A stretch of 64,000 nt of DNA from Mytilus californianus (Eukaryota): positions 71,796,001 through 71,860,000 of the forward strand of contig NW_026262723.1 of NCBI RefSeq assembly GCF_021869535.1. The letters run 5' to 3'. How positions within the stretch are numbered: position 1 is the stretch's first letter; each line of letters starts with the position of its first letter. The translations under genes were made by a program, and so were the position numbers. This document shows positions 1,702 through 55,855 of the stretch, one piece after another. A model generated the notes under the pieces. That model did not search any database. It was given only the letters and a program-made list of their open reading frames with translations, and was not told where the DNA came from.

Positions 1702-1764
1702 CTGAAAAAAATTTAAAAAGTCCATTAAGCATATAACAGAACATTGATTTAATTTATTCTATGA

Positions 1765-1925
1765 TAATTAACTCATCAGAGACACCATGATTGAAATTGT
1801 GTACGCCAGACGCGCGTTTCGTTTACAAAAGACGCACCAATGTTGCTCGGATCAAAAATTGTTAAAAAGGTCAAATAAAATACGAAGTTGAAAAGCATTG
1901 AGGATCCAACATTCCTAAAAGTTTA
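1765..1925 (-). mobile_element. Penelope-type LTR-like fragment with a decayed minimal hammerhead ribozyme (1809-1840)
   Basis: Minus strand reads UUGGUGC-GUC-UUUUGUA-AAC-GAAA-CGCGCG-UC, a mutated form of CUGAUGA-GUC...GAC-GAAA-palindrome-UC. Confidence 0.5.
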
Positions 1926-2571: not shown

Positions 2572-3215
2572 AGAAAATAAGAAGATGTGATTTGATTGCC
2601 AATGAGAAAACTCTCCACCAGAGACCAAACGACGTAAAAGTTAACGACCTTCGACAATAAGTAAAATCCATACCGCATAGTAAGCTATTAAAGGCCCCGT
2701 AATGACAAATGTAAAACAATTCAAACGAGAAAACTAACGGCCTGATTTATGCACAAAATAATAAACGAAAAACAAATATGATGTACAGCAACAAACGACA
2801 ACCACTGAATTACAGGCTCATGAGGTGGGACCTTCACATACAGAATGTGGAGGTGTTAAACATGTTTGCTGGCGCCAAACCCTCTCCCTAGCCCAGTGGT
2901 GTAACAGTAATACATAAGAATAAACTATAAAAATCAGTTGAAAAGGGCTTAACTCATCAGATCGATACAATCCAGAAAAACATCCAACAAAAACAAAGAC
3001 CGGGCGTGGCATGTTATTTATACATCTCTATCAACAAAAAAGACACAATTTGAAAGTGCAGATCTGAGAGTAGTCGCAGTTACTGACAGCTAGTACAAAG
3101 TCAATAACAACTAATAAAAAATCATGTATCTAAGCCTAAAATATAAATCAGTACACATCTAACATCTAACAGTCAGAGAAAACAAGACCTTGTGCAATGC
3201 CAAAATACAGGAAGA
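2572..3215 (-). mobile_element. 5'-truncated 3' tail of the Penelope-like element family
   Basis: Collinear with 19597-20300 (aagaagatgtg...gccaatgag...ctgagagtagtcgcag...ccttgtgcaatgccaa). Confidence 0.75.
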
Positions 3216-3534
3216 TTGTAGAACCGTGAATTTGCATAACGTCATAGACCGAGTACCTAAATTGCACCCATTTAGCAAAAATAGCAGCGGAAATCTTAGA
3301 AGTTTTCATAGAGACTAAACAATTTGTCTTTTTATGATTTGACATTATGCACGTCTTTCAATATATCTAATTATATTCAAATATACACAAAACGTTCAGA
3401 GTATATATCAACAGATGAAGTATCCACTGGAATAAAGTAAAATCTATGGAAAAGTCGTAATGTAACATCCACAAAGAGTCAACTTTTAAAAACGAGCAAT
3501 TAAAATATGTTACAGGCATCCATTTCTTGAATAA

Positions 3535-6324: not shown

Positions 6325-8830
6325 AATATTCAAAAATATATATCTTTATTGTCATATAAACATTATTAGTTTGTGACAAAAAAACAAAAACAAACATTAT
6401 ATAGCAAAGAAATGAACACATGGAAAAAAATCATAAGACTTCTGCCCTCAGTTCTAATGACTGTTTTATAAAGGAGACAATATTTTTAACGTGTTCCATG
6501 AAAGAGGGGTTTAGCATTTCTTTTACTTTTTGTTCTTGGGTAAGAGACATAAAATTATGAGAAGGTAAACAATTTTCAAATAGATTATCCCTGAGTTTTT
6601 TTGTTAATTTTACGTTCAAGGAGGAAGTGTTTTTCATTCTAGCAAGTGGCACAGTTTACATAATTTATCCTTTCTAGGAATTTTATAATAGCGACCCTTT
6701 TCTATTTCTAAGTTATGGTCACTAATTCTCAACTTAGTGAAGCATTTTCTTATAGAAAAGTAATTAGAAGCTAAATAAAATTCCCTATCCAAGCTAAGTT
6801 TTAAATTTTTATAAAGTAACAGTTTACTATTTTCATCATAACTATTTATTCTATTTTCAAACATATTCAAAAAATGTTCTTTAAATTCATTTTTAATCAA
6901 GGGCTGAAAAGACTTTATTTCATTAAAGTCCCTACAGTTATTAACTTTATCTAAACGGTCTTGGTTGGGTGAAATATTCTTTGCATATGTATACCAAGAA
7001 TAAGTACAATGGGAGACAAGCAGTTTTTTATAATAATATGCTTCTTTAAGTAAAGGATTTATATTTTTTAGAATTCAGTCTTTCTAGGTAAAATAGAGAC
7101 TGTAAAAAAATAAAATGTTCAAGGGGGAGTCTTCCTAGTTCTGCTCGGACTACTATAGTCGATGCGGTTTTTTTGGTGCCCAGCAAAAATTTACAAAAAT
7201 TAATGTGAACCTTTTCGAAAGGAGTTTTATCAATAAATGAAATACTCTTTGATCAAAGTTTTTATTATTTCCGTCAGCTCTTATCTTAGCTCTGTATCGT
7301 GTTATATAGCTATCCATAGAGGATATCTCCGAGTTATAAGTTATAACTGGTTGAACTAATTTATCAAAAAGATTACTAGAAATTTCTATTGGGAGATTTC
7401 CCAATGAAGCTACCTTGGTTTTAACCGAAAACATGACTTTTCTTGCTTTTTTCGCTAGGTCTTCTAAACTTGAAATAAGGTTACCATTGCTCTTTATAAG
7501 AATTCCTAGAAATTTATATTCTAATACATTTTTTATCATATTACCATTGTAGTTAAGAAATGAAACTACACTTTTGGCACAATGTGGCTGTAAAATCATG
7601 GTTTTAGTTTTATTTATATTTAGAGTAAGTTGCCAATTTTCACAGAAACTACTAAACTTATTTATACTGTTCTGTAGACCTTCTTTACTATCTGATATCA
7701 AAGTAGATCATCTGCAAAAGATAGTGATCCAAGGGTTGAGTCTACTAGTTTTGGTAGCATGGAGTCTTCAGCACAGAAGATATTATCTAGGTCATTTATA
7801 AAGATATTAAAAAAGTGGGACTAATGGAGTCCCCCTGTTTTACTCTTCGAAAGGGTTCAAAGAAATTGGAACAAGTATTGTTCCATTTCAAGGAAGTTTC
7901 AGTTTTCAAATACTGGTTCTTATAATATTAAATATATTTTTGCCCACTCCAATTTTTGCTAATTTATACAGTAAACCTCTTCTCCACACTGAGTCAAATG
8001 CCTTTTGAAATTCAAAAAAACAAATGAGCTACGTCGGATAGAAATCGACCTTATGCAAATGAATATCAATACATTTGTTAACTTATTTCGGGTTGAAAAA
8101 ATCTTTATGCAAACTCTGTAACTGTTTGAAAATTGAGTCGATACAGGAACCCTACAAAATAGACCAAAATTCATCTTTTATTTCGTATTTGAATTTTCCA
8201 AAATTAATCAAAGTCTTATAAATGAACATGTATACGTGCACTTACATCAGGTCGATTTCTATCCGACGCAGCTCAAATATATAACTTACTATTATTCTTA
8301 TGTAATTACTTATTTATCAATGCCTTTAATATAAAGAGACTATCAGTTGTCCTGTGGTTTTCTCTGAAACCAAACTGTGTTTTTGTGTATTTATCTTTCA
8401 TTAGTGTTTTTAATCTCTCATTAAGTACTGCACTAAATATTTTTGATATGCAAGTAAAGAGAGAAAGCCCTCTATAATTTGATGGATCTGACTTGCTACC
8501 AGATTTATGTATCAAAGTCATGTGGGATAGTGTCCAGTTTTTAAAATAAGATTAAATAAGTTTGCTAAAGAGTTTAATGTGAGCATACTACTATGTGTAA
8601 ATATTTCATTTAAGATGCAATCTGGTCCACTTGCTTTACCTTGCTTTAATTTATTCAAAATATGTTTTATTTGTTTTATTATTATAGGTTTATCAGTTAC
8701 TTCATTAGAATATAGATTATTTTCAATGTTTTGTAGTTCATTAATGATATTATTTTCGAAATGACAAATTACTTTATTACATTTTCCTTGGTCCTGCACA
8801 TGTTTAATTGTTTTATCTAATATCAAAAGT
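6325..8830 (-). mobile_element. 5'-truncated, frameshifted non-LTR retrotransposon (LINE) RT, RTE-X-like by its C-terminus
   Basis: Successive minus-strand motifs KQGKASGPD, HKSG..SDPSNYRGLSL, QFGFR, KAFDSVWREGL, VKQGDSISPT, FADD (~7705-7716), LNINKTK, YKFLG, LRISDHNLEIEKGRY..IPR...CKLC; aataaa near 6345. Confidence 0.9.
8026..8274. mobile_element. 249-bp MITE (Sola-like) inserted in the LINE RT
   Basis: 26-bp TIRs gagctacgtcggatagaaatcgacct / aggtcgatttctatccgacgcagctc (1 mismatch); 4-bp TSD AAAT at 8022-8025 and 8275-8278; GAG...CTC termini. Confidence 0.85.
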
Positions 8831-9172: not shown

Positions 9173-12100
9173 CATGACCATTTGCAGCTTTGGTGTCATC
9201 TCGATGCTTAATTAGATCACATCTAGTCCTAACTGAAATACGAACTAAATTTTGCTTCTCTATTTCGATTTCATATATTCTTATTGTTTAAGATGGAATT
9301 ATTGTAATTTTGCTAAAAACTTTAGTTTGTTTAAATAAAAGAGTCCGAAGGGAATTTGGTGCCAATAAATACTACACCACACACCCCTTCTAATCAAAAT
9401 ACTAATCAACTACCAGTAAATTATAAATAGCGACTCTGTGTTGATAGTAAAATTTATCTACAACGATTCTACCTCAGCCAATATAAACCTGATTCCTACA
9501 TTTGTACTTTTAACTAATATGTTTATCGTCATGGATAGCTCTGTTTTAATAGAACAATGTGGTATCCTACTAGCTACGACGACACACTTCGCACTTGACA
9601 AGCTACTACTTACTACCTGTACAAGTGTGTTTACAACAGGCCGCACCCTGTCCTTTATTGCATTGATGAGATTTTCAATCTGAGACTACAATCTGTAAAT
9701 TTCACCCATCAGGACTTAATTAAAGAACTGTTGGTCTTTTCCTTCGTAGATTAATGACATTGAAGAAAAACTCTCGCTTGCTTCTGTTTGAATCCCAGGG
9801 CTATACTATCATCGAAAAACGGGGTATTTCCATAAAGTTACCTTGATTGCTTAAATTAGCGTTTCTCTTCAACATCCCAATACATTTAACCTGACCTAAG
9901 ATTTACCCATCTAACATAATTATACTTGTTATTTTCTATGCTTAATGTCTTTGTATTAAGATGATATGTAAACAAAGGGTTCCTTTCGAACAGTTACTAA
10001 TGTAATCGATCAAACTTATGTAGCAAAACATCAGCTATCTTCACTCTAAATAACTTTGGGATAAGCTTGTTTTGGAACAGGAAACACATTGTATAGACAT
10101 GCAGAGTCGTCATAAATAGCGAAACGCCATGAATTTTGCTTTTTTTTTCGTCACAATTACCGAAAAAATACACATAGGTATGGGCTTTTTGGTGCTAAGC
10201 ACATGACATAGGTGAAATCTCCTTGTTCTTACTGTGCTATAATTTCGATAATGCACAGCTAAGGTGAGCATTAAATACCTCAGATATACTACACAGTTCA
10301 AAAATATTCTTACCTTTAGGGACGGTCTAGAATTTGTCAAAGGGCGCGTAATTCCATAAAAAGAAAATAGGAAGAAATACCGGCGAGTGTAGCGACCCTA
10401 AAAACAATTTTGACGATTTTATGCTTAAAAATGATATACATGACCAATCAAAGGGTGTGCGGCCTCTTCGCATTCCCCTTTTTTTTTAAATCCGCCACTG
10501 ACCTTGAAGTTACGACATAAACAACTTTGTACAAACTTTGCCATTTCAAAATATGAAATAGAAAGTGTTTCTTATTCCTTGGAACATTTTATGATATTTT
10601 TATGTTGTGTACAGTGTAAATCTTAAATTAAGTGTTTCAAAGTCAAACAAGATAATATATTTTTATTGTAATTTCTGCCAAAAAAGAAATGTAAGTAAGA
10701 ATATTAAAGCAAATGAAATACGATTTGGATTATTTTTGTGCTCAATGGAATTTATTACGACTTTTAAAATATTTTTTCCTTTTTAGTGACTGTTTTGGGA
10801 TCGAATTTAATGAGGTTCACATTTAAGTATGTGCCAAAACAGGGGGGGGGGGAGGGGGGGGAGAAGAATGCCTCACGAGTTTTTCCGGCCATTTTAACTC
10901 AAATTCGGAACATTAATATTTTAATCTTTATTAGTAGAGTACAAACAGTACTAGACCCAAGACCTTAACCGATTTCAAAATATCATACAAAAGTATATAA
11001 AAACAGTATCTAGAGAAAAGGATTAGTGTCCAACGAATTAACTTGTTATCGCAAAGGTAGTTTCCAATACGACAAACATTTTAACAATTGAATTAATTAA
11101 TCACATAGAAAGGTAAAAGGTTAGATAGACGTATACTATAGCACTTAAAATATATTGTCTGAATTTGATTTATTTCTAATTCAAATCTTCTGGGTTATAA
11201 TACCATGTCAATTAATTGCTACTACTATTTGATTTATTGTAATTTTCTCAAAAGCCAACAATAGTTCTGATCAAACCTCTCCCTTCGATCATTTTTCTTA
11301 AAAATGAATAAGATTGCCAAAACAAATCAAAACACAAATAGTCTCGAAAGATCAACACTTCAATTGTAAGGATATTTAAATCAGTGAAAATCGTTTGAAA
11401 TATATTGAGGGATTCTTCAATGATCAGATTGATGGTTGTTTTCTAGTTTAAAAAACAATGAATTTATAGCAATTATTCATAATACAATGTATGTCAGAGA
11501 TATTTAATATTATATGTAAATAGGTAATATCGAATCGTAAAATCTGGATGAAGTTGACGGCGAGACAACACAGTCAAAAGTAACACATGAAGTTGTGTAT
11601 TGTCTAGTAATTGAGGGGAATTTCGAACAAGAAAAAAATAACAAAGAAGCAAAACAATTTACGTTCAATTAATTTTAATAGGATTGTATTTTTAAAACAA
11701 ATAACCTAGATTTCATATGACGTTCCTTATTCCCTATTTATCTGAGACCTATTGTGTCATTGTATCAAAAACTATTTAAACTACTAAAATGACATACCTG
11801 AATTAGCAGTGTTTTGGCCTGACGTTTGTCTAATTAGACACAGGAAACAGTAACAGACAACACACCCGAGAGTATAAAGTATTGTTCTTTTCATTATTGT
11901 ACCGTAGTATCAAAAAGTAGTTGATATCGTATTGTCACGCTAGGTCTCTTCAGTTACAAACTAAAATTATGTATGTTATTGAAATATTTAAATCGTTTGT
12001 TCATTAGTGCATTCAGTCATAACAATTTAACACTTATCTAATAAGTGCGAAAAAAGGCCTAATGGGGGGGAAACACACAAGTGACAATAGGGGTAACTAA

Positions 12101-13569
12101 TTATCACACAATTATTGTGAAATAAACGCATTTGTTTTCCTGCATAGGTAACAGGTAAAACCCACTTTTTATCTGGCTTGAACATTCTTGTGTATTCATC
12201 CCTGATGAGTCCTCATCTTTGGATGCTTTTGAATGTGATCAGTTTGCTGTTATTTCTTCTGTAATACTGGTCAAAATCTTGGATTTCACTTTAGGTTGAT
12301 ATACACTATAAACGGAACATTCAACTCTATATCTATGAGCCGCCATCTTGGAAAGTTTTCTAGCTAAATCATGAAGTCAGTACGATTTGCGATAATAATT
12401 TAATTCTAATTTTAGGAATAATGAGTGCAAAATCATTTACCACATTCTTGAACGATTTTTTCTTTTCGGCAATATACATGATATACCAAGATAAACAATG
12501 TTAATTATCACGAATCATATGAATCGTCTTTTATCAGGAAAGGTGATTTTTGAACTATTGAAGATTTACTATTACAAATTAACTAGGTTCACACTGTTTT
12601 GCTAAATATCAAAAAACAAATAAGGGTGCACCCTTATTTTATTGGTCATGTGATTCTTTATTGCCCCCCCCCCCCCCCCCCCATTATGCATATTCCGGAC
12701 GAGAACATGTTAATTTGCGCACATTGCCTCTAGACTCTGGTATCTAGGGTATACAAGACATAATCTGGACATCACACATGGAGTCCAGAAGTGAGGAGCT
12801 TCTCTTGAAGATGCAGCATTTATCCCACATGCCATGGACGAAAGTGACAGTGAGCAGAGTGCAGTTGAAGAATAGAATATTAATTTAATCATTGTTAGGT
12901 AGCGGTCACATTGACGTTTATCTCAGTACTCCTCTTGCTCATCTTTTTGAAACCTATTTGTTTATATCATACTTTTTGCAACTAAGCAAATTTTTTGAAA
13001 ACTCTTAAAACATGTTTACCGGTTTATAACATATCCATGAGAAATAGTTCACATTTCATTTCACTTTAAAGAAAACAAACATTGTGGAGAGTTGTCTCAT
13101 TGGCAATTATACCACATCTCTTTTATATATATAGACGAAAATAATTGATCTTGTATATTAATTATAGTTATTGATAATAATTACTTGAATGGACGCAGCT
13201 TACATACACTTATATCGTTACAATCAAAGCCAAATAAAAAAAAACTGATATTCATGGATATCTATTAGTTTTAAAATACATCCATATGGACACGTCATTC
13301 GGTATCTGGTTTAAAGTTGTCTTCTTTGCAATAATATCACATCTTCTTTTTTTTCATACGGATTGAGACATGAATCTGTTTAATTTGACCAAATGATAAT
13401 AAAAGTAATAAGAAAGTACACTCGAACTTTATTCGAGATAAGAATGATAGTCGTATGTGGAATACCGGAACACTTTAACCAAGAGCAAGACTACTACAAG
13501 ATAAAAGCTAGTTAAGAATAAATTGACGATTGTGAAAACCTTATAAAAGAATTTCAGTTTAAAACTTAA

Positions 13570-19596: not shown

Positions 19597-21724
19597 ATAT
19601 AAAAAAGAAGATGTGGTATGAATGCCAATGAGACAACTCTCCACAAGAGACCAAATGACACAGAAATTAACAACTATAGGTCACCGTACGGCCTTCAACA
19701 ATGAGCAAAGCCCATACCGCACAGTCAGCTATAAAAGGCCCCGAAATGACAATGTAAAACAATTCAAACGAGAAAACTAACGGCATAATTTATGTACAAA
19801 AAATTAAAGAAAAACAAATACCGGTATGTAACACAGAAACAAACGACAACCACTGAATTACAGGCTCCTGACTTGGGACAAGCACATACATACAGAATGT
19901 GGCGGGGTTAAACATGTTAGCGGGATCCCAACCCTCCCCCTAAACTGGGACAGTGGTGTAACAGTACAACATAAGAACGAACTATAAAAAACAGTTGAAA
20001 GAGGCTTAACTCATCAGATGGATAAAAATACAAATACTACAAATACAAGTGGACGTGGCCGGGTACTTGTACGTCCAAACAACAAAAAGACACTAAGTTC
20101 AGATCTGAGAGTACTCGCAGTTACTAACAGCTAGTTCAAAGCCACTTACAACTAATAAAAAAAATTATGCATCTAAGACTAAATTATCAATCCGTACACA
20201 TCCAACATCCAATGGATTTAGTGTAAAGACATCATAAACAGTCAGAAAAAAACATGACCTTGTGCAATGCCAAGATACAGGTATCGACAGATTGTAGATC
20301 CATGAATGTGTATATGTATATAACAATAATATTTAGTTTGCTTTTAATTTACTGATAACAAAATCAATATTAGTACCAATAAAAACAATATTTAATGATC
20401 TAATTACAGTGTTGAATTGGTAACCTTTTAGAATATGTTTATTTAAAGGATCGATAAGTTTACCAGGATCGTTTCTAAATATCCGGGCACGGTAAACAAT
20501 ATTGCCGTAAAAATGAGGATGTGCAATCCCGTTTGAAATAAGTTTTCTACAGGTACAACCAAACTTCAAAACCAAATCTTTATATCTGTGAAATAATTTA
20601 GTAAAGGTTTTAAGTAATTTGTGGTAACGAAATCCCTGGCTTAATAATTTACCAGTAATACATAGATTACGTTCGTTAAAATCAAAAACGTCACAACAGA
20701 CACGGGCATAGCGAACGAGTTGTGAAATATAAACACCGTAAGATAGTGCCAAAGGAACATCACCACCCAAAAAGGGAAAATTAACAATAGGGAACGAAAA
20801 ATCGTCCCTTTTGTCGTAAATTTTATTGTGGAGTTTCCCGTGTAAAACCGAAATATCTAAATCTAGGAAAGGACAGTTGTTATCGTTTAAATTTGATTTA
20901 TTTAAAGTAACTTCCTTTGGGTAAATTTCGGCAGTATATTGAGAAAATTCTTGATTATTTAACGAAAAAATATCATCAAGATAACGGTAAGTGTTGTTGA
21001 ATTTATCAATTAAATGCAATTTACACGGGTCTTTACTGAGTTTGATCATAAACTATGATTCATAACAGTACAAAAACAAGTCTGCTATTAAAGGGGGGCA
21101 ATTGGTGCCCATAGGAATACCTACAACCTGTCGATAAACTTTGCTGCCGAAACGTACATAAATATTATCAAGGAGAAAATTAACAGCTTCAGTCATCTCA
21201 TCACACCTCCAGTAAGTATATCTAGCATATTTACCTTTCTCATTAGAGAAGAAGGCTTTAAATGAGTTGTAGTAAATATATTTGCATTCAGATTTACCAA
21301 ACGACCATTTAATTAAATAGTCAAATTTTTGTTTGATAAGATTGTGTGGAAGTGTAGTGTAAAGAGTAGAAAAGTCAAAACTGTCAACAGAATCAAAAAG
21401 ACCATCAAAAGCACGTAATTTATCTAAAACATCCAAAGAATTTTTTACACTCCAAAAATAGTTAATTCCACTATTTTCATATATTTTATTACAATAGTTT
21501 ATAAGCTCTTTGATAGTAGTTAAGGAACTTGTTAAAAGCGCTGAAAGATTAGTTGTAGAACACTTACTAGAGGCCGAGATGAAACGATATTTTACTGTTT
21601 TTTTGTGTAGTTTAGGTAACCAATATATAGTAGGGACCTTAAAATGTTCAGAAGAAGCCTTAAGCTGTGATGTGGTTATGATATGTTTGTTACATGTAAC
21701 TATATGACTCTCTGTGGGGCGCAT
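19597..21724 (-). mobile_element. Penelope-like element (probably Naiad clade): RT ORF with one nonsense codon, plus a ~730-bp 3' tail
   Basis: YWLPKLHK..RFIS, SFDFSTLYT.LPH, GIPMGTNC.PLIADLFL, RYLDD, FLDLDI, KIYDKRDDF..IVNFPFL, SYGVYISQLVRYARVC; in-frame TAG at 21050-21052; no GIY-YIG domain in the retained part. Confidence 0.88.
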
Positions 21725-39504: not shown

Positions 39505-40110
39505 AAAATTGAGGATGGAAATGGGGAATGTGTCAAAGAGACAACAACTCGACCAAAGCACCCGCACCAAAGAGCAGAAAACAGCCCAAGGCCATCAATT
39601 GATCATCAACACAGCGAGAAAATCCTGCACCCGGAGGCGGGATTCAGCTGGCCACTAACCAAATGTGTACTAATTCAGTGAAAATGGACGTCACACTAAA
39701 CTCCGAAACATTTAAATGAACTAAAATTAAACATACAAGACTAACAAAGGCCAGAGGCTCCTGACTTTGGACAGGCGTAAAAATGCGGCGGGGTTAAAAT
39801 GTTTTGTGAAATCTCAACCCTCCCCTATACCTCTAGCCAATGTAGAATAAACAAACACACAACAATACGCATAGTAAAACTCAGTTTAAAAGAAGTCCGA
39901 GTCCGATGTCAGAACAGGTAACAGAAGAAACTAAGCAGAAAGACAATGATACATACATTAACAAAGGACTACTAGCAGTAACTGACATGCCAGCTCCAGG
40001 CCTCAATTAAACTGATTGAAAGATTATGTCTTCATAATATGAAAAGCAAGCACAATCCCTCCCTTTAGGGGTTAAGTTAGTATCATACCATCATAAAGTA
40101 TATGAGAAGA
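39505..40110 (-). mobile_element. Second interspersed repeat family (aaaattgag.atggaaatggggaatgtgtcaaagagac end), probably another retroelement tail
   Basis: Shares a core with the Penelope tail (ggctcctgact..ggaca.gc...gcggggttaaa...caaccctcccc); otherwise different sequence. Confidence 0.55.
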
Positions 40111-40324: not shown

Positions 40325-42475
40325 CTTATAGGCCGACAAAGCAGCCAACAATGTGGTGGTGGTATGACGTAATTACTACACGGAAGTCCTTAATGAAATT
40401 ATACATTCAACTACATTCAAGGCCGTACGCTCCATAGAGAGTCATATAGTAAATAATCATGTCACTACCACAGTTCAGCTTAAGGCCTCCTCGAAACATT
40501 TGAAGGTCCCAACTCTGTATTGGTTACCTAAACTACACAAAAAACCCGTAAAATATCGTTTCATCTTGGCCTCTAGTAAGTGTTCTACTACTAATCTTTC
40601 GGTGCTTTTAACGAGTTCCTCAACTACTATCAAAGAACTTATCGTTAATTTTTGTAATAACACATATGAAAACAATGGAATGAACCATTTTTGGAGTGTA
40701 AAAAATTCTTTGGATGTTTTAGATAAATTACATACATTTGATGGTCATTTTGATTCGGTTGACAGTTTTGACTTTTCCACTCTTTATACTACACTTCTAC
40801 ACAATCTTATCAAATAAAAGTTTTTCTATCTAATTAAATGGTCGTTTGATATATCTGGTTGCACATTTATTTGCTGCAACTCATATAAAGCCTTTTCTCT
40901 AATGAGAAAGGTAAATATGCTAGATATACTTACTGGAGGTGTGATGAGATGATTAAAGCACTAAATTTTCTCTCCTTGACAACATTTATGTATATTTCGG
41001 CAATAAAGTTTATCGACAGATTGTAGGTATTCCTATGGGCACCAATTGTGCCCCTTTAATAGCAGACTTGTTCCTTTACTGTTTTGAATCACAGTTTATG
41101 ACCAAACTCAGATAAATTCAACAACACTTACCGTTATCTTGATGATATTTTTTCGTTAACTAATCAAGAATTCTCTAACTATACTGCTGAAATTTACTCA
41201 AAGGAACTTACTTTAAATAAATCTAATATCAACAACAATATCTGTCCTTTCCTAAATTTTGATATTTCAGTATTACACCAGAAACTCTACACAAAAATTT
41301 ACGACAAAAGGGATGATTTTTCTTTCCCTATTGTTAATTTTCCCTTTTTGGACGGTGATGTTCCTTTGGCACCGTCTTACGGTGTTTATATATCCCAACT
41401 CGTTCGCTATGCTCGTGTTTGTAGTGACGTTTGGGATTTTAATGAGCGTAATCTATGTATCACTAGTAAATTATTAAGTCAGGGATTTTGTTACCACAAA
41501 TTACTTAAAACGTTTACTAAATTCTTTCATAGATTCAAAGATTTGGTATGCAAGTTTGACTGTATCTGTAGACAACTTATATAGCACACCCTAAATTTTA
41601 CGGTGATGTTGTAAACCGAGCCCGGAAATTTAGATACGACCTGCGTAAGCTTATCAATCCTTTAAATAAACTTATTCTAAAAGGTTACCTATTCAACACT
41701 ATAATTAAATCTTTGAATATTGTTTTTATCGGTGTAAATATTGATTTTGTTATCACTAAATTAAAATCATACTAAATATTACACATATGTACTTTCACGG
41801 TACTACAATCTGTTGATACTTATAGTTTGGCAATGCACCAGGTCATGTTTTTCTCTGACTGTGAATGACGTCTTTACACTAAATCCATTTTTAGTCTTAG
41901 ATACATGATTTTTTTCATTAGTTGTTATTGTCTTTGAACTAACTGTCAGCAACCTGCGAGTACTCTCAGATCTGTACTTATTGTATTTTTGTTTTTGGGA
42001 TGTATAAGTACCCATCCACGTCCACTTTGTGTTTTTGTTAGATGTATTTCTGTTTGTATCCATCTGATGAGTTAAGCCTTTTTCAACTGATTTTTATAGT
42101 TTGTTCTTATGTTGTACTGTTACACCACTGTCCCAGGTAAGGGGAAGGGTTGAGCGCTCACAAACATGTTTAACCCCGCCACATTCTTTGTGTGCCTGTC
42201 CCAAGTCAGGGGCCTGTAGTTCAGTGGTTGTCGTTGGTTCATATCTGTCATATTTGTTTTTCGAAAACTGTTTTGTTATAAATTAGGCCGTTAGTTTTCT
42301 CTATTGAATTGTTTCATATTTTTCATGTCGGGGCCTTTTAAGCCGACCATACGGTATGGGTTTTTCTCATTGTTGAAGGTCGTACGGTTGCCTATAATTG
42401 CTTACATCCACTCCATTTGAACTTTGGTGGATAGTTGTCTCATTGGCAATCATACCACATCTTCGTATTTTTATA
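40325..42475 (+). mobile_element. Second, more decayed Penelope-like RT copy with the same 3' tail
   Basis: DKAANNVVVV, YWLPKLHK, SFDFSTLYT, GIPMGTNCAPLIADLFL, RYLDD, SYGVYISQLVRYARVC with stops and frameshifts; tail 41776-42475 collinear with 19597-20332. Confidence 0.88.
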
Positions 42476-43386: not shown

Positions 43387-45777
43387 CTACGCAATATTTT
43401 CTCCCTCCATATTAATTCCCCTGTATATCAAATGACTTTCTACAATCTCGTCTATCTTTCTTCTCATTCTGAGAACTTTTCTTCTCTCATTTAAAGAGCA
43501 CATTCGTTTTAAAAGTTTCGGAATAAAACTGACAAAAAGTGTCGTTGCGGTTTGTGTGACAACATTCAATTCTTGAAAACCATCAAAATTCACTAAAATA
43601 CCCAAAGAAATATAAAGACAAAATATTATAATACTGATTTTTATAACTGAGACAAACACTTCAACTCGTATTGGTTTGTATGTATGAACAATATATTTAT
43701 AAAGATCCAGCGGGATATTTGCACCTTCAACTTCTCTTTTGTACAAATGTTGCATAATGCCCAGCTTCTTCCCTTTTCGTTTACAAACTTTTTTGGTTTG
43801 TACAAAAAGTTGTTCATATGTATCATTTACTGAATGAATACTGTCGTATATATACATAACAATTGTTATTCCGAATATCACCCATCCTTCTGTATAACTT
43901 GGGTTTACAAATAGCCCAGTATATGTAAAAATAGCAACTTTTGCAATAAATATAAAACTGTCAACAAATATAATGGAAAACATATAAAAAGTTATCATTA
44001 ACATCACAAATATGCAAGGTAAAATAAAAACAACCAAGCATTTCCCAATAGAACCTTTGTCGCCTAGCAAAGTTATCAGATTTCTTGTGTATGCTTTGAA
44101 TACGATCAATATCCCAAAAATTGTAGGAAAACCAAAAAATGCAACAGTTAACAATAGTTCAATTAAACAAGCAAATAAATAAAATAAACCTACTATAATT
44201 AAAAAGATGTAAGTAAAAATACCACGGTGAATGCGGTTTGTGAAATACTGAAATCTGCCGAGTTGTAAATCTAATACATATCCCCAAAAGCATGGATTTA
44301 ATAATGAAAAAATATTGGCCAGCATTGTTTGGTGAATTTTTGTATACCCTCCTTGGCCATTACATAAAACACGTTTAGTTCCAAACCGTTCTCTTAATCT
44401 TAAATTCATTGTCAAGGGTGACGATGGTTCCGAATTATTTACTGGAAGTCCACTTACAAGTGTTTCTCCAAGATCTCGTGGTACAGTAATGAAAATTATC
44501 AAACATCCGATATACGCACCTAACGCAACAAATGGTCCTCCGAGAAATATTAGAAAATTGTCTTTGCTTCGCTGGTATCCAGCTATCATTGATAAGAAAT
44601 CCTTTGGGGCGCCTTGCTTGACACTTTCGATAATAAAATCTCTGTGGTATATAAAATGAACCAAAACTTTCAGAAAAATAACAAGAAGACTTGTCACTGC
44701 TAATAAACATCGAATTATTCGCGAGGTAGTGATTGGATGAATCAAACAGCAGCGTCTGATTGGACTTGCAATTATTGAAAGTACAGTGATCGGGTTATGG
44801 TTTATCCATAATATTTCAAGTGGTCCCGATTCCTGGAGCAGCGGTGTTGATTCGTTTGGATTACCTTTCTGTTGATCGACGACTGGCCTTAGAAGCATGA
44901 ATATATTGTCTATTCCATTAGCATCTAAATGCTTATAGATATATGACAGAACCCAGGCGAGTACTATTCCGAAATAAAGATAAAGCACAACACCAATCAC
45001 AAATGGACATATCCACCATACACTTCCGAATTTAAATGATTCGCCAGGACATATGATCGTCATATTCTTTGTATTGACATCAAATATCTGTTTGCAACAT
45101 TTATAGCCTATAGTTTCTACAGGGCAGATGACTTGTTTGCATAATTTGTACAAAAACAGGCTTTCGATGAAGATTCTAGTTTTGAAACACCAGTAGCTAT
45201 AGTTGTATTGGTCATGCATCTTGGCTAGATCATGGTAAAGGTCGGCAAACGCCAAAGCAAATCTTTCCGTGGTATTTTTCTGTCCAATAGCTATATTACA
45301 ATTACCTTTAACCGTTATGTTAAGCCATAGTGGTAATGAAGTGTACTTTTTTAGCATCCCCATGGAGAGAGTTTCATATTCTGCTGGCCAATCAAGATAC
45401 TGTTCACCTCCTTCAAAACCATCGAATGTCCAAACCCATTCTAATGGTTGGATTACACATCTCGTGTATTTCACCGTCGACGAATGATTACAGAACTGAA
45501 AATGCAAGTTAACAAACCTGTACTTGAATTTTGTCACTTTATATGTAAAATATTCCTTACTCTCCGGGGTAAAGTGAAACGAACAGTCTTTGTCCAATTT
45601 TCTCTGATCCTTGTATGGCCGAACATCAGCGTAGTCACTGCATCTTATTTTCGAAGATTTCGCTACGTTTGTATAACAAAAACTCTTCTTTCTGTGAGAA
45701 ACTAAATTTGTTATGCTTTCACTTAATGTTGCATTAAAAAAATAATAAAGAATGATACATAATAATCCTATTTCCAT
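43387..45777 (-). CDS. 796-aa uncharacterised membrane protein, uninterrupted CDS (signal peptide, Cys-rich ectodomain, ~10 TM); paralog A
   Basis: 2.4-kb ORF in AT-rich DNA; collinear with 46881-49379 (YFTYKV, YTRCVIQP, ICP.ETIGY.CC, ESVKQGAP, FLIFLGGP, TMLANIFSLLNP, IFTYTGLF.NPSYTEG, VVTQTATT). Confidence 0.92.
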   Translation of the reverse strand: MEIGLLCIILYYFFNATLSESITNLVSHRKKSFCYTNVAKSSKIRCSDYADVRPYKDQRKLDKDCSFHFTPESKEYFTYKVTKFKYRFVNLHFQFCNHSSTVKYTRCVIQPLEWVWTFDGFEGGEQYLDWPAEYETLSMGMLKKYTSLPLWLNITVKGNCNIAIGQKNTTERFALAFADLYHDLAKMHDQYNYSYWCFKTRIFIESLFLYKLCKQVICPVETIGYKCCKQIFDVNTKNMTIICPGESFKFGSVWWICPFVIGVVLYLYFGIVLAWVLSYIYKHLDANGIDNIFMLLRPVVDQQKGNPNESTPLLQESGPLEILWINHNPITVLSIIASPIRRCCLIHPITTSRIIRCLLAVTSLLVIFLKVLVHFIYHRDFIIESVKQGAPKDFLSMIAGYQRSKDNFLIFLGGPFVALGAYIGCLIIFITVPRDLGETLVSGLPVNNSEPSSPLTMNLRLRERFGTKRVLCNGQGGYTKIHQTMLANIFSLLNPCFWGYVLDLQLGRFQYFTNRIHRGIFTYIFLIIVGLFYLFACLIELLLTVAFFGFPTIFGILIVFKAYTRNLITLLGDKGSIGKCLVVFILPCIFVMLMITFYMFSIIFVDSFIFIAKVAIFTYTGLFVNPSYTEGWVIFGITIVMYIYDSIHSVNDTYEQLFVQTKKVCKRKGKKLGIMQHLYKREVEGANIPLDLYKYIVHTYKPIRVEVFVSVIKISIIIFCLYISLGILVNFDGFQELNVVTQTATTLFVSFIPKLLKRMCSLNERRKVLRMRRKIDEIVESHLIYRGINMEGENIA

Positions 45778-46880
45778 ATTTCAATTTGATGTTCTTCAAA
45801 TGTCCCAGTTATATGTTGACAACATACCTGTGTTTCACCTGTGTATATCTATTTTTGTGTCAAAGCCATGCCAATTTGAATTGTAATGGGTTTTCCAATC
45901 GTCATTTAAATCCCGAAATCGTGGTCGGGTTTCATATATTTACAGGACTTCTCACACTTACTTATTTAATCATATATTTAATGTACATATACTTCCTAAA
46001 TATGTATCTATTATATGCGGAAATTATGCAACTGGTTAATTGCTTTCTTCCTAAAATCTCGTGATACGTGCATCGTTATCAACGTTTTTGTAGTTATTTA
46101 TTTTTTTAAAAGCAGGATAATGAAGATGTGATTTTATTCTAAAATATGATTTTTTTTTAGTTCAATTGACTTTCTATAAGCCCGGTATACGCATTCCTTT
46201 GAAAGTCCGGGAAAAAACCACTTTATAAATCTGACACTCCATTAGTCGGACTCCATATAATCTGACAAGGTTTAACAATTACTTCATAAACTTGTACTTC
46301 TTTTACGAGTCTTTTTCTATACAATGTGGTCTTGTAGCTGTAGTGACAAAGCCAATGAAGTTCAACTATCATGGGTGAAATGGACCGTCCGAATTTGACC
46401 CCTTTTGAAGTTTGTCAAAGTAACCCATGCCGATGAGCTCAGCAGGTCAGTAGAATCGAAAACATGTGCTTTCTTTAATTTATTTTGAAATGACTAATAA
46501 TCATCAAATTTCTATGGTTTCCTTTTAAACTGACACCGAATAAAGTAATTTGGTCATTTATATTTTATTCTACTTTTAAAACAAATTGAATTCTTAAACC
46601 GTTTCTCCATTTATATATAACATAATACCCTAAGTCATTCAATGGTATAATTGAATAGTATATACCTTACAAATATCTAGACAACATGTTGAATGCACAG
46701 TATTTATAGGTCATTTATTTTGAACTTTCAGTATCGGTGTATTAAAAAACTTCCTCATGTGACTTAACACAAACGATTTAAATGTACTGAAAATTTAAAT
46801 ACACTTCCAAAAAATAACAGGTGGAAATTCCGATTTGAAAAGACTAACGCTGCTTAATTCCCATATTGAACATTTCTGTG
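45778..46880. promoter_or_regulatory. Candidate shared bidirectional promoter with Rel/NF-kB-like motifs
   Basis: GGGTTTTCCA 45888-45897, GGGAAAAAACCA 46209-46220, TGGAAATTCC 46822-46831 between two divergent start codons. Confidence 0.4.
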
Positions 46881-49379
46881 ATGCAGATATTCGCAATGCC
46901 AGATAAAAAGAATTATTTGTTATTGTTAGTATATTCTGTGTTAAATTTAAGATTGTCTTACTGTCACTATCAACAACCGAACGTTTTTCTGTCAGGTGTT
47001 ACCGATTCTGGAAATATGTCGAACATTGCCAATTCTTCTGAAGGCATACCATGTAGTCGTTACAAGGAATTAAGACCGTACAATAACAGAAATGCTTTGG
47101 ATAAAGAATGCATTATTTCTTTTACTCCTAGTAGTAAACAATACTTTACCTATAAAGTTATGAAATATAAATTCAAGTTTGTGCCAATCCATTTGAGGTT
47201 TCTGAACTTGTCATCACATAAGGAAATTCATTATACCAGATGTGTGATCCAACCCATGGATTGGATTTGGACATTTCGTGGAGTTGAGGGGAACTACGGA
47301 GGACGACAGTATCTAACCTGGCCACCGGAATATGGAACGCTCTCAATTGGCATGTTAAAAGCACACACTTCAACACCACTTCACATGAACCTAACCGTTC
47401 AAGGTAAATGTGACTTAGTGATTGGTGCCAAAAATACAACAATGCGCCTGGCAATGGCTTTTGATAATTTTACCAATGATCTTGCATTGACCAAAGATGA
47501 ATATAATTATAGTTACTGGTGTTATAAAGAAAGAATATTTGTTGAAAATTACTTTTTATATCAACTTTGTTTGCACGTCATTTGTCCAATTGAGACAATT
47601 GGTTATAGATGCTGCAAACATACATATGACGTTAACATACATGGATTTACTATCCGCTGTCCTGGACATTTCTATGTGTTTGATGGTGTATGGTGGGTGT
47701 GTCCATTTGTAATCGGCTTTATATTATATTTATACTTTGCATTAATGCTTTTTTCTCTTCTATCTGTTTTATACAAACACCTGCCGTTGATAGCTGGGCA
47801 TAGTAGCAACAACGTTCAACAAATTCCAAGTGCACGCAAACAACAATATAAAAATATGTCAGCAAACATTTACAGAAATTCAAAAGAAAAGGAAAAATGG
47901 ATTCACCATAATCCAGTTACTCTGTTTGCAATTTGTGTCATGCCGCTTAGAAAGTGCTGTCGTCTGTATCCGGTTCTGACGTCTCGAGTACTGCGTTTTA
48001 TAATTGCTGCTTTAAGTGTTGCGATTATATTTATAAAAGTGTTTGTTCATTTTCAATACGACCGCGCATACATAATAGAAAGTGTTAAACAGGGAGCGCC
48101 TATGAATTTTCTATCAATGATAGCTGGTTACCAACTGAGCAAAAATAACTTCTTAATATTTCTTGGTGGTCCGTATATTGCACTCGGGGCATATTTGCTG
48201 TGTTTTTTTGTTTTAGTTTGCTCTCCGAAATGTTTTTCAGACTTTCTTAAAGTGGGTTTACCCGAGAAAGCAAACAAACCAAGATTTGTTGTAACGATCG
48301 ATTTAAAGCTACGAGAGTTTTTTGGTTCACGCAGGATTCTTACTATTCGAGAAGACGGGTATGGAAAGATTCAGAAAACCATGCTTGCAAACATATTTTC
48401 ACTGCTCAATCCGAGGTTTTGGAAATACGCAATTTCACTTCAAATTGACCGATTCAAACATATTGCGGAAAAATTAATTGGGGAGAGTCTAGTTCTTAAT
48501 TGTTTCAAAGTGATAGCTTTTATCTTTCCTTATCTTACTTTTTGCTTCGTTGAATTGCTTTTTACATTAATGTGTTATGGTTTTCCGACTGTTTTTGCTA
48601 TTGGACTAGTCTATCGAGCTTATTCCAGGAACGTTTATGATTGGTTAAAAAACAGTAGGATAGGGTACCCAGCTATGTTTGTTGTGTTACCTGTTTGTAT
48701 TGTTCTACTAACTTTTACTGTTTATATGTTTTCTATAATTTTTATTGATAGCTTTATTTTCTTGTCGAGAGTTGCAATTTTTACATATACCGGTCTTTTT
48801 GCAAACCCAAGTTACACAGAGGGATACCTTATCTTTTCTATTACTGTAACAATGTACTTGTATGATAGCACCAACTCCATTAATGAGACTTACGAACAAC
48901 TCTTCAACCAGACAAAGAAAGTATGTAAACGATTGAATAGGCAACTTGCAGAGGATTGTCCTGTTATACTGCACACAAAGGACATTGAAGGAGCTAGAAT
49001 TCCGCTTGAGTTATACATGTTTGTAGTAGACGCTCAAAAACCAAAAAGAGTTGAAATTTTAAAATCGTTTCTTAAAGTAACCACCATATTCTTATGTTTG
49101 TACATTTCTGTTGGTATATTAACGCGATTTGATGGATTTCAGCAGCTTTCTGTAGTAACACAAACTGCAACCACAACTTTTGTGTGTCTCGTTCCAAAAA
49201 TATTTACCAGAATGTGTACTTTAAATGAAAGACGTGAAATTCTACAAATGAGAAGTAAAATTCATAAACATGTTGAACATTTTCTTCTTTGTAAAGGAGT
49301 TGATTGTGGTGGAATAAAATCATCGAGTGGAACTGAAAACATGACTATTGACTCAGATGTTGAAAATAGCTTATCCTGA
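46881..49379 (+). CDS. ~830-aa uncharacterised membrane protein, uninterrupted CDS (signal peptide, Cys-rich ectodomain, ~10 TM); paralog B
   Basis: ORF track starts at a TTG (46866); first ATGs at 46881 and 46896, the latter directly preceding the hydrophobic leader; collinear with paralog A. Confidence 0.92.
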   Translation: MQIFAMPDKKNYLLLLVYSVLNLRLSYCHYQQPNVFLSGVTDSGNMSNIANSSEGIPCSRYKELRPYNNRNALDKECIISFTPSSKQYFTYKVMKYKFKFVPIHLRFLNLSSHKEIHYTRCVIQPMDWIWTFRGVEGNYGGRQYLTWPPEYGTLSIGMLKAHTSTPLHMNLTVQGKCDLVIGAKNTTMRLAMAFDNFTNDLALTKDEYNYSYWCYKERIFVENYFLYQLCLHVICPIETIGYRCCKHTYDVNIHGFTIRCPGHFYVFDGVWWVCPFVIGFILYLYFALMLFSLLSVLYKHLPLIAGHSSNNVQQIPSARKQQYKNMSANIYRNSKEKEKWIHHNPVTLFAICVMPLRKCCRLYPVLTSRVLRFIIAALSVAIIFIKVFVHFQYDRAYIIESVKQGAPMNFLSMIAGYQLSKNNFLIFLGGPYIALGAYLLCFFVLVCSPKCFSDFLKVGLPEKANKPRFVVTIDLKLREFFGSRRILTIREDGYGKIQKTMLANIFSLLNPRFWKYAISLQIDRFKHIAEKLIGESLVLNCFKVIAFIFPYLTFCFVELLFTLMCYGFPTVFAIGLVYRAYSRNVYDWLKNSRIGYPAMFVVLPVCIVLLTFTVYMFSIIFIDSFIFLSRVAIFTYTGLFANPSYTEGYLIFSITVTMYLYDSTNSINETYEQLFNQTKKVCKRLNRQLAEDCPVILHTKDIEGARIPLELYMFVVDAQKPKRVEILKSFLKVTTIFLCLYISVGILTRFDGFQQLSVVTQTATTTFVCLVPKIFTRMCTLNERREILQMRSKIHKHVEHFLLCKGVDCGGIKSSSGTENMTIDSDVENSLS

Positions 49380-52049: not shown

Positions 52050-53472
52050 TTCTCTATACTTTATCTTTTTTACTTATTATCATCTCTATTCTTTATAATT
52101 CTAGCACCCCAGTTTTCTCTATTCTTTATATTCTAGCACCCCATTATTCTCTATTCTTTATACTTGTGTACCCCATTATTCTCTATTCTTTATATTCTAG
52201 CACCCCATTATTCTCTATTCTTTATATTCTAGCACCCCATTATTCTCTATTCTTTATATTCTAGCACCCCATTATTCTCTATTCTTTATATTCTAGCACC
52301 CCATTATTCTCTATTCTTTATATTCTAGCACCCCATTATTCTCTATTCTTTATATTCTAGCACCCCATTATTCTCTATTCTTTATATTCTAGCACCCCAT
52401 TATTCTCTATTCTTTATACTTGTGTACCCCATTATTCTCTATTCTTTATATTCTAGCACCCCATTATGCTCTATTCTTTATATTCTAGCACCCCATTATT
52501 CTCTATTCTTTATATTCTAGCACCCCATTATTCTCTATTCTTTATATTCTAGCACCCCATTATTCTCTATTCTTTATATTCTAGCACCCCATTATTCTCT
52601 ATTCTTTATATTCTAGCACCCCATTATTCTCTATTCTTTATATTCTAGCACCCCATTATTCTCTATTCTTTATATTCTAGCACCCCATTATTCTCTATTC
52701 TTTATACTTGTGTACCCCATTATTCTCTATTCTTTATATTCTAGCACCCCATTATTCTCTATTCTTTATATTCTAGCACCCCATTATTCTCTATTCTTTA
52801 TACTTGTGTACCCCATTATTCTCTATTCTTTATAATTCTAGCACCCCATTATTCTCTATTCTTTATATTCTAGCACCCCATTATTCTCTATTCTTTATAT
52901 TCTAGCACCCCATTATTCTCTATTCTTTATATTCTAGCACCCCATTATTCTCTATTCTTTATACTTGTGTACCCCATTATTCTCTATTCTTTATAATTCT
53001 AGCACCCCATTATTCTCTATTCTTTATATTCTAGCACCCCATTATTCTCTATTCTTTATATTCTAGCACCCCAGTTTTCTCTATTCTTTATATTCTAGCA
53101 CCCCATTATTCTCTATTCTTTATATTCTAGCACCCCATTATTCTCTATTCTTTATATTCTAGCACCCCATTATTCTCTATTCTTTATACTTGTGTACCCC
53201 ATTATTCTCTATTCTTTATAATTCTAGCACCCCATTATTCTCTATTCTTTATATTCTAGCACCCCATTATTCTCTATTCTTTATATTCTAGCACCCCATT
53301 ATTCTCTATTCTTTATATTCTAGCACCCCATTATTCTCTATTCTTTATATTCTAGCACCCCATTATTCTCTATTCTTTATATTCTAGCACCCCATTATTC
53401 TCTATTCTTTATATTCTAGCACCCCATTATTCTCTATTCTTTATATTCTAGCACCCCATTATTCTCTATTCT
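52050..53472. repeat. 32-bp minisatellite, about 44 copies
   Basis: Unit ctctattctttatattctagcaccccattatt with interspersed tacttgtgta variants. Confidence 0.97.
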
Positions 53473-54260
53473 GTATAAGTTTGGTCCAGTTTTCCCTGTT
53501 CTGTATTTCTTTCGTCCCGTCCGTTTAATAGTCTGTGTGTTTTTTAACATTATTATCTATTCTGTAAACCCCATCCAGAACCTCAGACATGGTGTTGTCA
53601 TTCTTCGACATATATGGTCACAAGTTAGCATAGATTCTTCATCGGGTATCTATTTTATTTATATAATTACTTCAATTTCAGAAGAAAAAACAATTAAAAC
53701 TATAAATATAAATTTAAGCAGGCACTTATAATACACATTGTATTATATGTCTCTGTTTTAACATTATTATATAAAAACTGCCTGCAGGATATAATATAAA
53801 TGCATTGTACCGATTACAGTGCGCACAGCATTACATTTGATCACAAAACACATAAAGAAAACAGACTTGGCAATCTGAAATCAAGACATGTAACAGCTAT
53901 CAAAACACGATGCATGCTAAACATCAATAGACAGCACAGGATGAAAAAGAAGTTCGAAATTAATGACAATTTTGTCATATGTACACCTAAATTTATATGG
54001 TTTCTGGTGTATACTCGTCTAAACTTTACAAGAAATAAAATGCTTCGCTGGGGCGCAGCTTGATACGACCGCAGAGGTCGAACCCTGAACAGTTGGGGCA
54101 AGTATGGACACAACATTCAAGCTTGATACAGCTCTGAATTTGGATTGTTATTAAATATTTGACACAGCATAGGTTTCTGACACAGAAAGAATGTGGTCTA
54201 AGAACTTGAATTTTTTTAATTTACCTATTATGGTCCAATGTCCAAAATCAAAATACATGG

Positions 54261-55855
54261 TTAGATTCAGCATATCAAAGAACCCCATATATTCAATTTT
54301 TGTTAAAATCAAACAAAGTTTAATTTTGGACCCCAACTTGGACAAACTTGAAAACTGGGCCCATAATCAAAAATCTAAACACATGTTTAGATTCAGCATA
54401 TCAAAGAACCCCAAGAATTCAATTTTTGCTAAAATCAAACTAAGTTTAATTTTGGACCCTTTGGACCTTAATGTAGACCAATTTAAAAAACGGGACTTAA
54501 AATTAAAAATCTAAATACACGGTTAGATTTGGAATATCAAAGAACCCCAATAATTCAATTTTTGATGAAATCAAACAAAGTTTAATTTTGGACCCTTTTG
54601 ACCTCAATATGAACCAATTTGATAGCGGGGCCCACAAATAAAAAATCTAAATTCATGGTTAGATTCAGCATATCAAAGAACCCCATATATTCAATTTTTG
54701 TTGAAATCAAAAAAAGTTTAATTTTGGACCCCAACTTGGACCAACTTGAAAACAGGGCCCATAATCAAAAATCTAAACACATGTTTAGATTCAGCATATC
54801 AAAGAACCCCAAGAATTCAATTTTTGTTAAAATCAAACTAAGTTTAATTTTGGACCCTTTGGACCTCAATGAAGACCAATTTAAAAAACGGGACTTAAAA
54901 TTAAAAATCTAAAAACACGGTTAGATTTGGCATATCAAAGAACCCCAATAATTCAATTTTCGATGAAATCAAACAAAGTTTAATTTTGGACCCTTTTGAC
55001 CTCAATATGAACCAATTTGATAGCGGGGCCTACAAATAAAAAATCTAAATACATGAGTTAGATTCAGCATATCAAAGAACCTCATATATTCAATTTTTGT
55101 TGAAATCAAACAAAGTTTAATTTTGGACCCCAATTTGGACCAACTTGAAAACTGGGCCCATAATCAAAAATCTAAATACATGTTTAGATTCAGCATATCA
55201 AAGAACCCCATATATTCATTTTTTGTTGAAATCAAACAAAGTTTAAATACTGGACCCTATCTTGGACCAACTTGAAAACTGGGCCCATAATCAAAAATCT
55301 AAACACATGTTTAGATTCAGCAAATCAAAGAACCCCAAGAATTCAATTTTTGTTAAAATCAAACTAAGTTTATTTTGGACCCTTTGGACCTCAATGTAGA
55401 CCAATTTAAAAAACAGGATCCAAAAATTAAAAACCTAAATACACGGTTAGATTTGGAATATCAAAGAACCCCAATAATTCAATTTTAGATGAAATCAAAC
55501 AAAGTTTAATTTTGGACCCTTTTGACCTCAATATGAACCAATTAGATAACGGGGATCCACAAATAAAAAATCTAAATACATGGTTAGATTCAGCATATCA
55601 AAGAACCCCATATATTCAATTTTTGTTGAAATCAAACAAAGTTTAATTTTGGACCCCAATTTGGACCAACTTGAAAACTGGGCCAAAAATCAAAAATCTA
55701 AATACATGTTTAGATTCAGCATATCAAAGAACCTCATATATTCAATTTTTGCTAAAATCAAACAAAGTTTAATTTTGGACCCTTTGGACATTAATGCAAT
55801 TTGAAAACTGGACCCAAAATTAAAAATCTAAATACACTGTTAGATTCGGCATAAC
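54261..55855. repeat. Satellite array of 12 monomers of 126-137 bp with higher-order ABC structure (398 bp)
   Basis: ttagatt...atcaaagaacc anchors at 54261, 54387, 54523, 54659, 54785, 54921, 55058, 55184, 55311, 55447, 55584, 55710; final partial ttagatt at 55840. Confidence 0.93.

Follow-up and report, generated by a model that had tools for sequence, protein, structure and literature searches.

A head-to-head pair of paralogous genes, referred to below as A and B, was characterised in a 64,000-nucleotide stretch of the Mytilus californianus genome (contig NW_026262723.1, positions 71,796,001 to 71,860,000; this whole stretch is the window, and positions are counted from its first letter). 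A and B are real, expressed and selectively constrained genes, which encode members of a membrane-protein family without any detectable relative among characterised families, either by sequence or by structure. Profile searches place both in a single-exon gene family of Lophotrochozoa that is large and undescribed. The best explanation overall, held with about even confidence, is a constrained A/B pair of this undescribed family, acting most likely as a ligand-sensing receptor or as a solute/lipid carrier. The main features of the locus are the following:

43387..45777, minus strand: gene A, single-exon coding sequence including the stop codon, 796 amino acids from its ATG (open reading frame (ORF), RNA sequencing (RNA-seq), ratio of nonsynonymous to synonymous substitutions (dN/dS))
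46881..49379, plus strand: gene B, single-exon coding sequence including the stop codon (ORF, RNA-seq, dN/dS)
45778..45986, minus strand: 5′ untranslated region (5′UTR) of gene A, approximate (RNA depth 5.97 in the bin 45787-45986, zero from 45987)
45987..46786, no strand: untranscribed spacer between the divergent transcription units (zero RNA depth, covered by a DNA run)
46719..46758, plus strand: weak candidate for a conserved promoter-proximal block of gene B (shared with the spacer of contig L002, see below)

The divergent gene pair

Exactly two long ORFs, those of A and B, occur between 42 and 51 kb of the window, and they are the only ORFs of more than 240 amino acids in all of its 64 kb, which, at a G+C content of about 31-35%, places both of them far beyond chance. 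An earlier interpretation made from the letters alone (the sequence-only reading) had described two intron-free coding sequences of about 800 amino acids, collinear and roughly half identical, which point away from each other across 1.1 kb, and all these features could be verified. In the case of B, the ORF as listed begins with a TTG (46866-49379, plus strand, 837 amino acids), and the candidate eukaryotic starts are the ATG at 46881 (832 amino acids) and the ATG at 46896 (827 amino acids), the latter being the methionine in common with the ortholog. The distance from ATG to ATG is 1103 bp, of which about 200 bp correspond to the 5′UTR of A and about 800 bp are untranscribed. Alignment of both proteins by BLASTP (E = 0) gave 403 identical residues out of 773 (52%), running collinearly from just past the signal peptide to the C-terminus, and the shared motifs quoted from the letters were all found in the A/B alignment.

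Transcription was followed in a stranded RNA-seq run (X21), whose raw reads were aligned to 43387-49379, in two further cDNA-like runs, X1 (same species label) and X5 (a second species label, about 97% identical), and with a DNA run (X15) alongside. Gene A showed an RNA depth of 5-14 in X21, with nearly all first mates on the plus strand, and gene B a depth of 1-6, with first mates on the minus strand only, which indicates that A is transcribed from the minus strand and B from the plus strand, as predicted. A lack of transcription, the objection that the sequence-only reading had raised against itself, does not apply to either gene. Splice joints were absent from the RNA reads over 43387-49379, in keeping with intron-free coding sequences. 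The contigs from X1 and X5 cover the coding regions of both A and B, the spacer not being included, and RNA depth was zero at 45987-46786 in X21, X1 and X5, a stretch spanned by the DNA run X15. One cDNA contig from X5 stops at 45917 at gene A, continuing as adapter sequence, and a second one begins at 46838 at gene B; together with the RNA depth, these ends point to a 5′UTR of about 140-210 nt for A and of at least 43 nt for B. Transcript starts would map at about 45917-45986 for A and at about 46787-46838 for B, leaving a gap of about 800-900 bp. The two genes show opposite-strand starts less than 1 kb apart, as in a bidirectional gene pair, and both are covered in X21, X1 and X5.

A word-indexed search recovered ten relatives, and its repetition with a 102-sequence alignment added none to these 10 proteins. 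The arrangement of the window recurs on one contig each from two other species. In L001 (ENA), a gene for 797 amino acids on the minus strand and another for 831 amino acids on the plus strand stand 1.2 kb apart, and contig L002 (Logan) shows the same A/B layout with an entire spacer of just 422 bp between start codons. The minus-strand genes of L001 and L002 are orthologs of A (93% and 70% identity, respectively) and the plus-strand genes are orthologs of B (91% and 67% identity), L002 standing at a saturated synonymous distance. Linkage in other species, a check suggested together with the sequence-only reading, is thus preserved in both cases.

In a maximum-likelihood tree, the A clade and the B clade (5 rows each) had 100% support each in the Shimodaira-Hasegawa-like approximate likelihood ratio test (SH-aLRT) and were sisters, again at 100%. 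Both clades nest among other bivalve sequences (groups of Mytilus, scallop and Saccostrea), which suggests that the A/B duplication is specific to one bivalve lineage. As placed by the tree, this duplication is older than at least five sampled taxa, with both copies in each clade's set; the remaining transcript representatives of both clades were drawn from separate run accessions, of which only two are numerically adjacent. Sites fixed differently between both clades are few (34 out of 796) and scattered. Local duplication is common in the family, and the head-to-head layout was found, among the loci examined, only in the A/B clade. In Mercenaria mercenaria (contig L007), two family members that are 60% identical lie on the same strand at 974-3499 and 10001-12472, 6.5 kb apart, in an independent local duplication whose orientation is unlike that of the window pair, and the family genes of scallop, Mytilus and octopus had no paralog within 10 kb. 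A and B would thus derive from one duplication in a single bivalve lineage and would have stayed head to head since then, about 0.4-1.2 kb apart, and they may have split or specialised an ancestral role.

Both copies are old and have been kept open, as the sequence-only reading had proposed. Calculated by the Nei-Gojobori method, dN/dS against the L001 orthologs was 0.135 in A, at a dS of 0.22, and 0.157 in B, at a dS of 0.25, far from the value near 1 that would have spoken against the pair, and these ratios indicate purifying selection. Against the L002 orthologs, dS was saturated and dN was about 0.2, and between the paralogs A and B dS was also saturated, with a dN of 0.41. By region, the ratio ranged from 0.03 to 0.29, and in the ectodomain it was 0.12-0.14 in both A and B, which rules out a fast-evolving recognition ectodomain; none of the regional values of A and B pointed to diversifying selection in this exposed part of the protein.

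With respect to the spacer, identity with that of L001 is 86% overall and about 95% in the roughly 200 bp adjoining each gene, with indels in the middle. The block at 46719-46758 is the only one common to the window spacer and the 422-bp spacer of L002 (41 bp, 78% identity), where it has the same orientation and lies equally far upstream of gene B, about 100-160 bp from the ATG; its score of 31.0 bits, compared with a maximum of 30.1 for shuffled sequences, is marginal. A and B probably have a divergent control region in common and are co-expressed from it. Their likeness to bidirectional paralog pairs lies in transcription away from each other, from starts less than 1 kb apart, in an arrangement kept in three species. 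They differ from such pairs in the actual distance between starts in the window and in the silent, indel-rich middle of its spacer, so that a single shared core promoter is only a possibility for A/B.

The conserved layout also bears on a possibility raised in its basic form by the sequence-only reading, namely that each protein is an obligate subunit of a hetero-oligomeric ion channel or of a ligand-gated receptor, both genes being co-transcribed from one bidirectional promoter. Such a partnership would fit with both copies being kept in all five taxa of the clade, with a divergent layout that survives to saturated dS around a spacer as short as that of L002, and with depths of A and B within about 3-fold in the same RNA libraries. 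However, the relatives checked outside the A/B clade are either lone genes or same-strand tandems, so that the ancestral protein evidently needed no second paralog, and the few sites fixed differently between clades are not concentrated on any one surface-forming segment. Solved channels show no similarity to the family, and the transcript starts in the window lie about 800-900 bp apart, with the silent spacer in between. An A-B hetero-oligomer is possible, and its obligate form under one promoter is considered unlikely.

The family and its possible relatives

An exhaustive HMMER search of 1.84 billion representatives with a 12-sequence profile found 327 family representatives at E<=1e-3, a number that falls to 224 with a limit of E<=1e-10 and to 154 with one of E<=1e-30. 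The majority of the proteins have 740-870 amino acids and match over their whole length. The family spreads over bivalves, gastropods, cephalopods, an annelid and a nemertean. Its bivalve members, all labelled "uncharacterized" or "hypothetical", come from Mizuhopecten, Mercenaria, Mactra, Mytilus (three species), Potamilus, Sinanodonta, Mya and Saccostrea, and other members labelled as uncharacterized come from the gastropod Haliotis, the nemertean Tubulanus and the annelid Owenia. Paralogs number at least ten in octopus and 3 in Mya. Single-exon coding sequences were found in scallop (808 amino acids, 2427 bp), Mercenaria (823 amino acids, 2472 bp), octopus (747 amino acids, 2244 bp) and Mytilus (790 amino acids, 2373 bp). 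Out of the interpretation offered by the sequence-only reading, the old paralogs, the purifying selection, the missing named family, the divergent transcription in the same libraries and a layout kept in two further species all stood. The pair is no rare local oddity, since A and B represent one lineage-specific duplication in a family of at least 327 clusters across Lophotrochozoa. No description of this family was found in the literature on its gene identifiers or on STRA6 in molluscs.

The lack of introns could be accounted for if the pair were of viral or transposon origin and had been domesticated, and both the single-exon coding sequences among intron-rich neighbours and the retroelement debris elsewhere in the window could be seen as hints of it. 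On the other hand, viral structures (BFVD) gave no match, the pair has no bounding terminal direct or inverted repeats, which rules out a mobile cassette, and the family is under purifying selection and is single-exon in all molluscs checked, with members in three phyla. From this breadth it follows that any viral or transposon origin would predate Lophotrochozoa and would be irrelevant to the present function. A recent origin of this kind is largely refuted, and the explanation as a whole appears extremely improbable.

Searches for known families were consistent with the failure of the sequence-only reading to recognise any. A and B had no match in Pfam at E<=1, and sets of 12, 10, 9 and 60 further members, scanned at E up to 10, gave only scattered single chance matches; NCBIfam gave no match either. 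Among all PDB sequences at E<=10 (phmmer with A; hmmsearch with profiles A1, A2 and A4), only a lipase fragment appeared, at E of about 0.7-1.5. In the distant member P0047, residues 208-262, at the Cys-rich end of the ectodomain, gave a sub-threshold match to TMEM95, a family of sperm proteins (E 0.017, 15 bits, the cut-off being 27), which is the sole hint of kinship for the ectodomain and is probably due to chance.

Fold comparisons followed the same trend. When the whole model of A was compared by Foldseek with 350,542 PDB chains, nothing was found at E<=1e-3, the best E being 0.39 with template modelling scores (TM-scores) of 0.06-0.14, and VIA-align found no convincing match either on Foldseek's 468 chains or on 48,161 representatives. 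A structural match over most of the transmembrane (TM) domain to solved channel or transporter folds was not found in these comparisons, nor was any match to the viral structures of BFVD, so that the Foldseek check suggested with the sequence-only reading revealed no known fold among solved or viral structures.

The sole characterised name on any family member is STRA6: two proteins of Octopus bimaculoides, P0153 and P0173, are named "Receptor for retinol uptake STRA6" in UniRef and "uncharacterized" at NCBI, and P0153 matches the family profile at E of about 1e-36. This label raises the possibility that the family is a very divergent branch of STRA6, moving retinoids or other lipids across the membrane. 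As known from the zebrafish structure, STRA6 has nine TM helices, with the N-terminus out and the C-terminus in, and cytosolic helices after the last TM. The family resembles it in all three aspects, a weak argument because unrelated families have the same topology. STRA6 is not known to have a large N-terminal ectodomain, so that the Cys-rich, glycosylated ectodomain of about 230 residues sets the family apart, and the spacing of the helices differs as well. The Pfam family RBP_receptor (PF14752) was matched by none of the about 90 members scanned, at E up to 1-10 (nothing at E<=1 for A, B and P0153, nothing at E<=10 for the sets of 12 and 60 members), and no solved STRA6 chain was matched at E<=10 by three family profiles or by A or P0153 as single queries. 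STRA6 was also absent from the top 50 of Foldseek against the PDB and from both VIA-align searches. Moreover, the family is present in an annelid, a phylum reported to lack both STRA6 and its ligand carrier RBP4 in a study of Platynereis (PMC5821490). The Pfam, PDB-sequence and fold tests led to the rejection of STRA6, and we conclude that the label is an artefact of automatic annotation or, in the best case, the trace of a kinship too distant for detection here; a divergent STRA6 branch is very unlikely. An Aplysia gene named STRA6, which may or may not belong to the family, serves as the retinol importer in a published study of expression (PMC8195618). Through automatic annotation, a wrong retinoid-uptake component may be entering the inferences on invertebrate retinoid signalling.

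Two other systems look alike in layout only or in part. TM9SF proteins (nonaspanins) also start with a signal peptide and a lumenal domain, of about 230-250 residues, which nine TM helices follow, a likeness limited to layout; no member scanned matched the Pfam family EMP70 (TM9SF), and the structure libraries used are not known to contain a solved TM9SF protein. SID-1/SIDT proteins share a length of about 800 amino acids and the order of large N-terminal ectodomain, one TM helix, cytosolic loop and TM block. SIDT1 appeared at rank 2 in the list of the wide VIA-align search, with a match of only 68 residues, and neither a Pfam SID-1_RNA_chan match nor the conserved His/Asp/Ser metal site of the SID-1/CREST type was found in the family.

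Predicted architecture and function

A first AlphaFold2 model of A, built on 12 sequences, reached a predicted local distance difference test score (pLDDT) of 53.6 and was discarded in favour of a run on 102 sequences, with a pLDDT of 89.3 and a predicted TM-score (pTM) of 0.87. Its weak parts are the signal peptide, residues around 285-330 and the last four residues. The model, extended to B by alignment, divides the proteins as follows:

45025..45717, minus strand: gene A ectodomain, residues 21-251, alpha/beta, glycosylated (model, sequons, conserved Cys)
43498..45024, minus strand: gene A membrane domain, residues 252-760, nine TM helices and cytosolic helical loops (model, charge bias)
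46974..47684, plus strand: gene B ectodomain, aligned to A residues 21-251 (collinear alignment, all ectodomain Cys kept)
47685..49217, plus strand: gene B membrane domain, aligned to A residues 252-760 (collinear alignment, hydropathy profile like that of A)

Residues 58-242 form an alpha/beta domain of eight strands and three long helices, with a pLDDT above 90 over 60-250. The TM helices of the model span residues 252-284, 348-377, 413-433, 520-549, 551-572, 576-624, 627-648, 703-731 and 739-760, accompanied by helical loops at 434-519 and 649-702 and by a C-terminal helix at 764-785. Glycosylation sequons (N-x-S/T) are concentrated in the ectodomain of the aligned sequences (5.0 per sequence versus fewer than 0.7 in any other region), the loop 434-519 carries a net charge of +5.9, and both the segment after TM7 and the C-terminal tail are rich in lysine and arginine. 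Sequon density and charge bias together suggest that the chain starts outside, crosses the membrane in nine TM helices and ends inside. The sequence-only reading was right about the signal peptide and the Cys-containing ectodomain, and its count of about ten hydrophobic segments should be lowered to nine TM helices, because the model and the positive-inside rule make 576-624 one helix; splitting it into two would place basic segments outside.

Conservation in the 102-sequence alignment is distributed over both domains. Within the ectodomain, the core conserved at >=80% consists of six cysteines (C65, C160, C197 and C227 at 98-100%, C228 and C243 at 84-87%), W114, W116, S138 and L142. Within the membrane domain, the same threshold is reached by R353, R356, P391, G413-G414-P415, P433, F497-W498, R508, E540, P551, P626, Y642, Y654, P702 and P753. 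No histidine is conserved at >=80% anywhere in this alignment. An internal duplication of the TM halves, as present in many transporters, was discarded, the probability given by profile-profile comparison (hhalign) being below 1%.

As predicted directly from model and sequence, the signal peptide brings the protein into the secretory pathway, where the N-glycosylated, disulfide-bonded ectodomain of about 230 residues lies outside the cell or in the lumen, followed by the nine TM helices in an N-out/C-in orientation. The cytosolic side is occupied by a helical assembly made of the loops 434-519 and 649-702 and the basic C-terminal helix, with conserved arginines presumably lying at the inner ends of TM2 and in the loop 434-519. 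The ectodomain would stand above the helix bundle, covering its mouth and the short, highly conserved outer loop 378-412, and the near-invariant acidic residue E540 (TM4) is likely to be buried in this bundle. With such a disposition, the protein would most likely sense a ligand as a receptor or act as a carrier of a small solute or lipid, its place being the cell surface or a membrane of the secretory pathway. The lineage-specific expansions of octopus and Mya would favour a sensory or environment-facing role, and the uniform purifying selection appears to argue against an arms-race receptor.

Several points weigh against this receptor or carrier. The function is deduced from architecture alone, and the subcellular location is presumptive. 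Both the contact between the ectodomain and the loop 378-412 and the burial of E540 come from sequence order and helix positions. The loop 285-347, assigned to the cytosol, is net acidic. The fold searches used the whole model of 796 residues, a size at which single domains can be missed, and co-regulation is based on the presence of A and B in the same libraries and not on correlation across tissues.

An alternative is an intracellular membrane enzyme or lipid scramblase of the endoplasmic reticulum, Golgi or lysosome, with a lumenal domain. A signal peptide, a lumenal domain and many TM helices are the layout of several organellar families, and uniform purifying selection, including that on the ectodomain, fits a housekeeping role better than a fast-evolving receptor. 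Yet the family shows no conserved set of His, Asp or Ser suggestive of catalysis, its conserved residues being mostly Cys, Trp, Pro and Gly together with R353, R356, R508, E540, Y642 and Y654. The lack of conservation of typical catalytic residues makes a catalytic role improbable. Expansions such as those of octopus and Mya are also unusual for housekeeping enzymes, and solved membrane enzymes and scramblases gave no fold match. An organellar enzyme or scramblase therefore has a low probability.

A bolder version of the receptor or carrier, which has to be regarded as doubtful, would see in the family a new nine-helix fold with a new disulfide-bonded ectodomain cap, forming a receptor or transport class exclusive to Lophotrochozoa, and in the A/B pair its conserved two-subunit version under a shared divergent promoter. 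In any case, the family counts at least 327 clusters in annelids, nemerteans and molluscs, the last including farmed oysters, mussels, clams, scallops and abalone, and for none of these clusters is there an assigned function, a family in Pfam or a relative of solved structure. Membrane families of the orphan kind are no rarity; the confident model unmatched among solved structures, the spread over three phyla and the conserved divergent pair make this one a good target, well defined in the search for a possible new membrane-protein fold. The conserved A/B pair, for its part, offers a natural test of whether the pairing of paralogs means co-regulation or complex formation.

Other features of the window

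Some further elements were observed along the window. An ORF of 182 amino acids at 7153-7701 (minus strand) has a weak match to RVT_1 (E 8.8e-4, below the Pfam cut-off) and was probably left behind by a retroelement. A pair of adjoining ORFs, 238 and 223 amino acids long (20333-21049 and 21053-21724, minus strand), with one stop codon between them and no Pfam match at E<=0.01, could be one interrupted gene or the ORF of a repeat element. By the 3′ end of gene A, an inverted repeat of 54 nt, 78% complementary (39779-39832 and 42135-42188, arms 2.3 kb apart), may mark the ends of a small mobile element, in which the gene pair is not enclosed. Beyond gene B, a minisatellite with a 32-bp unit (43.5 copies, 95% matches) occupies 52083-53477 and accounts for the GC skew of -0.57 and the AT skew of -0.26 of the 52-54 kb bin. 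Finally, tandem repeats whose periods of 136, 262 and 398 bp are nested in one another (80-96% matches) extend over 54244-55000, reaching at least the scanned end.

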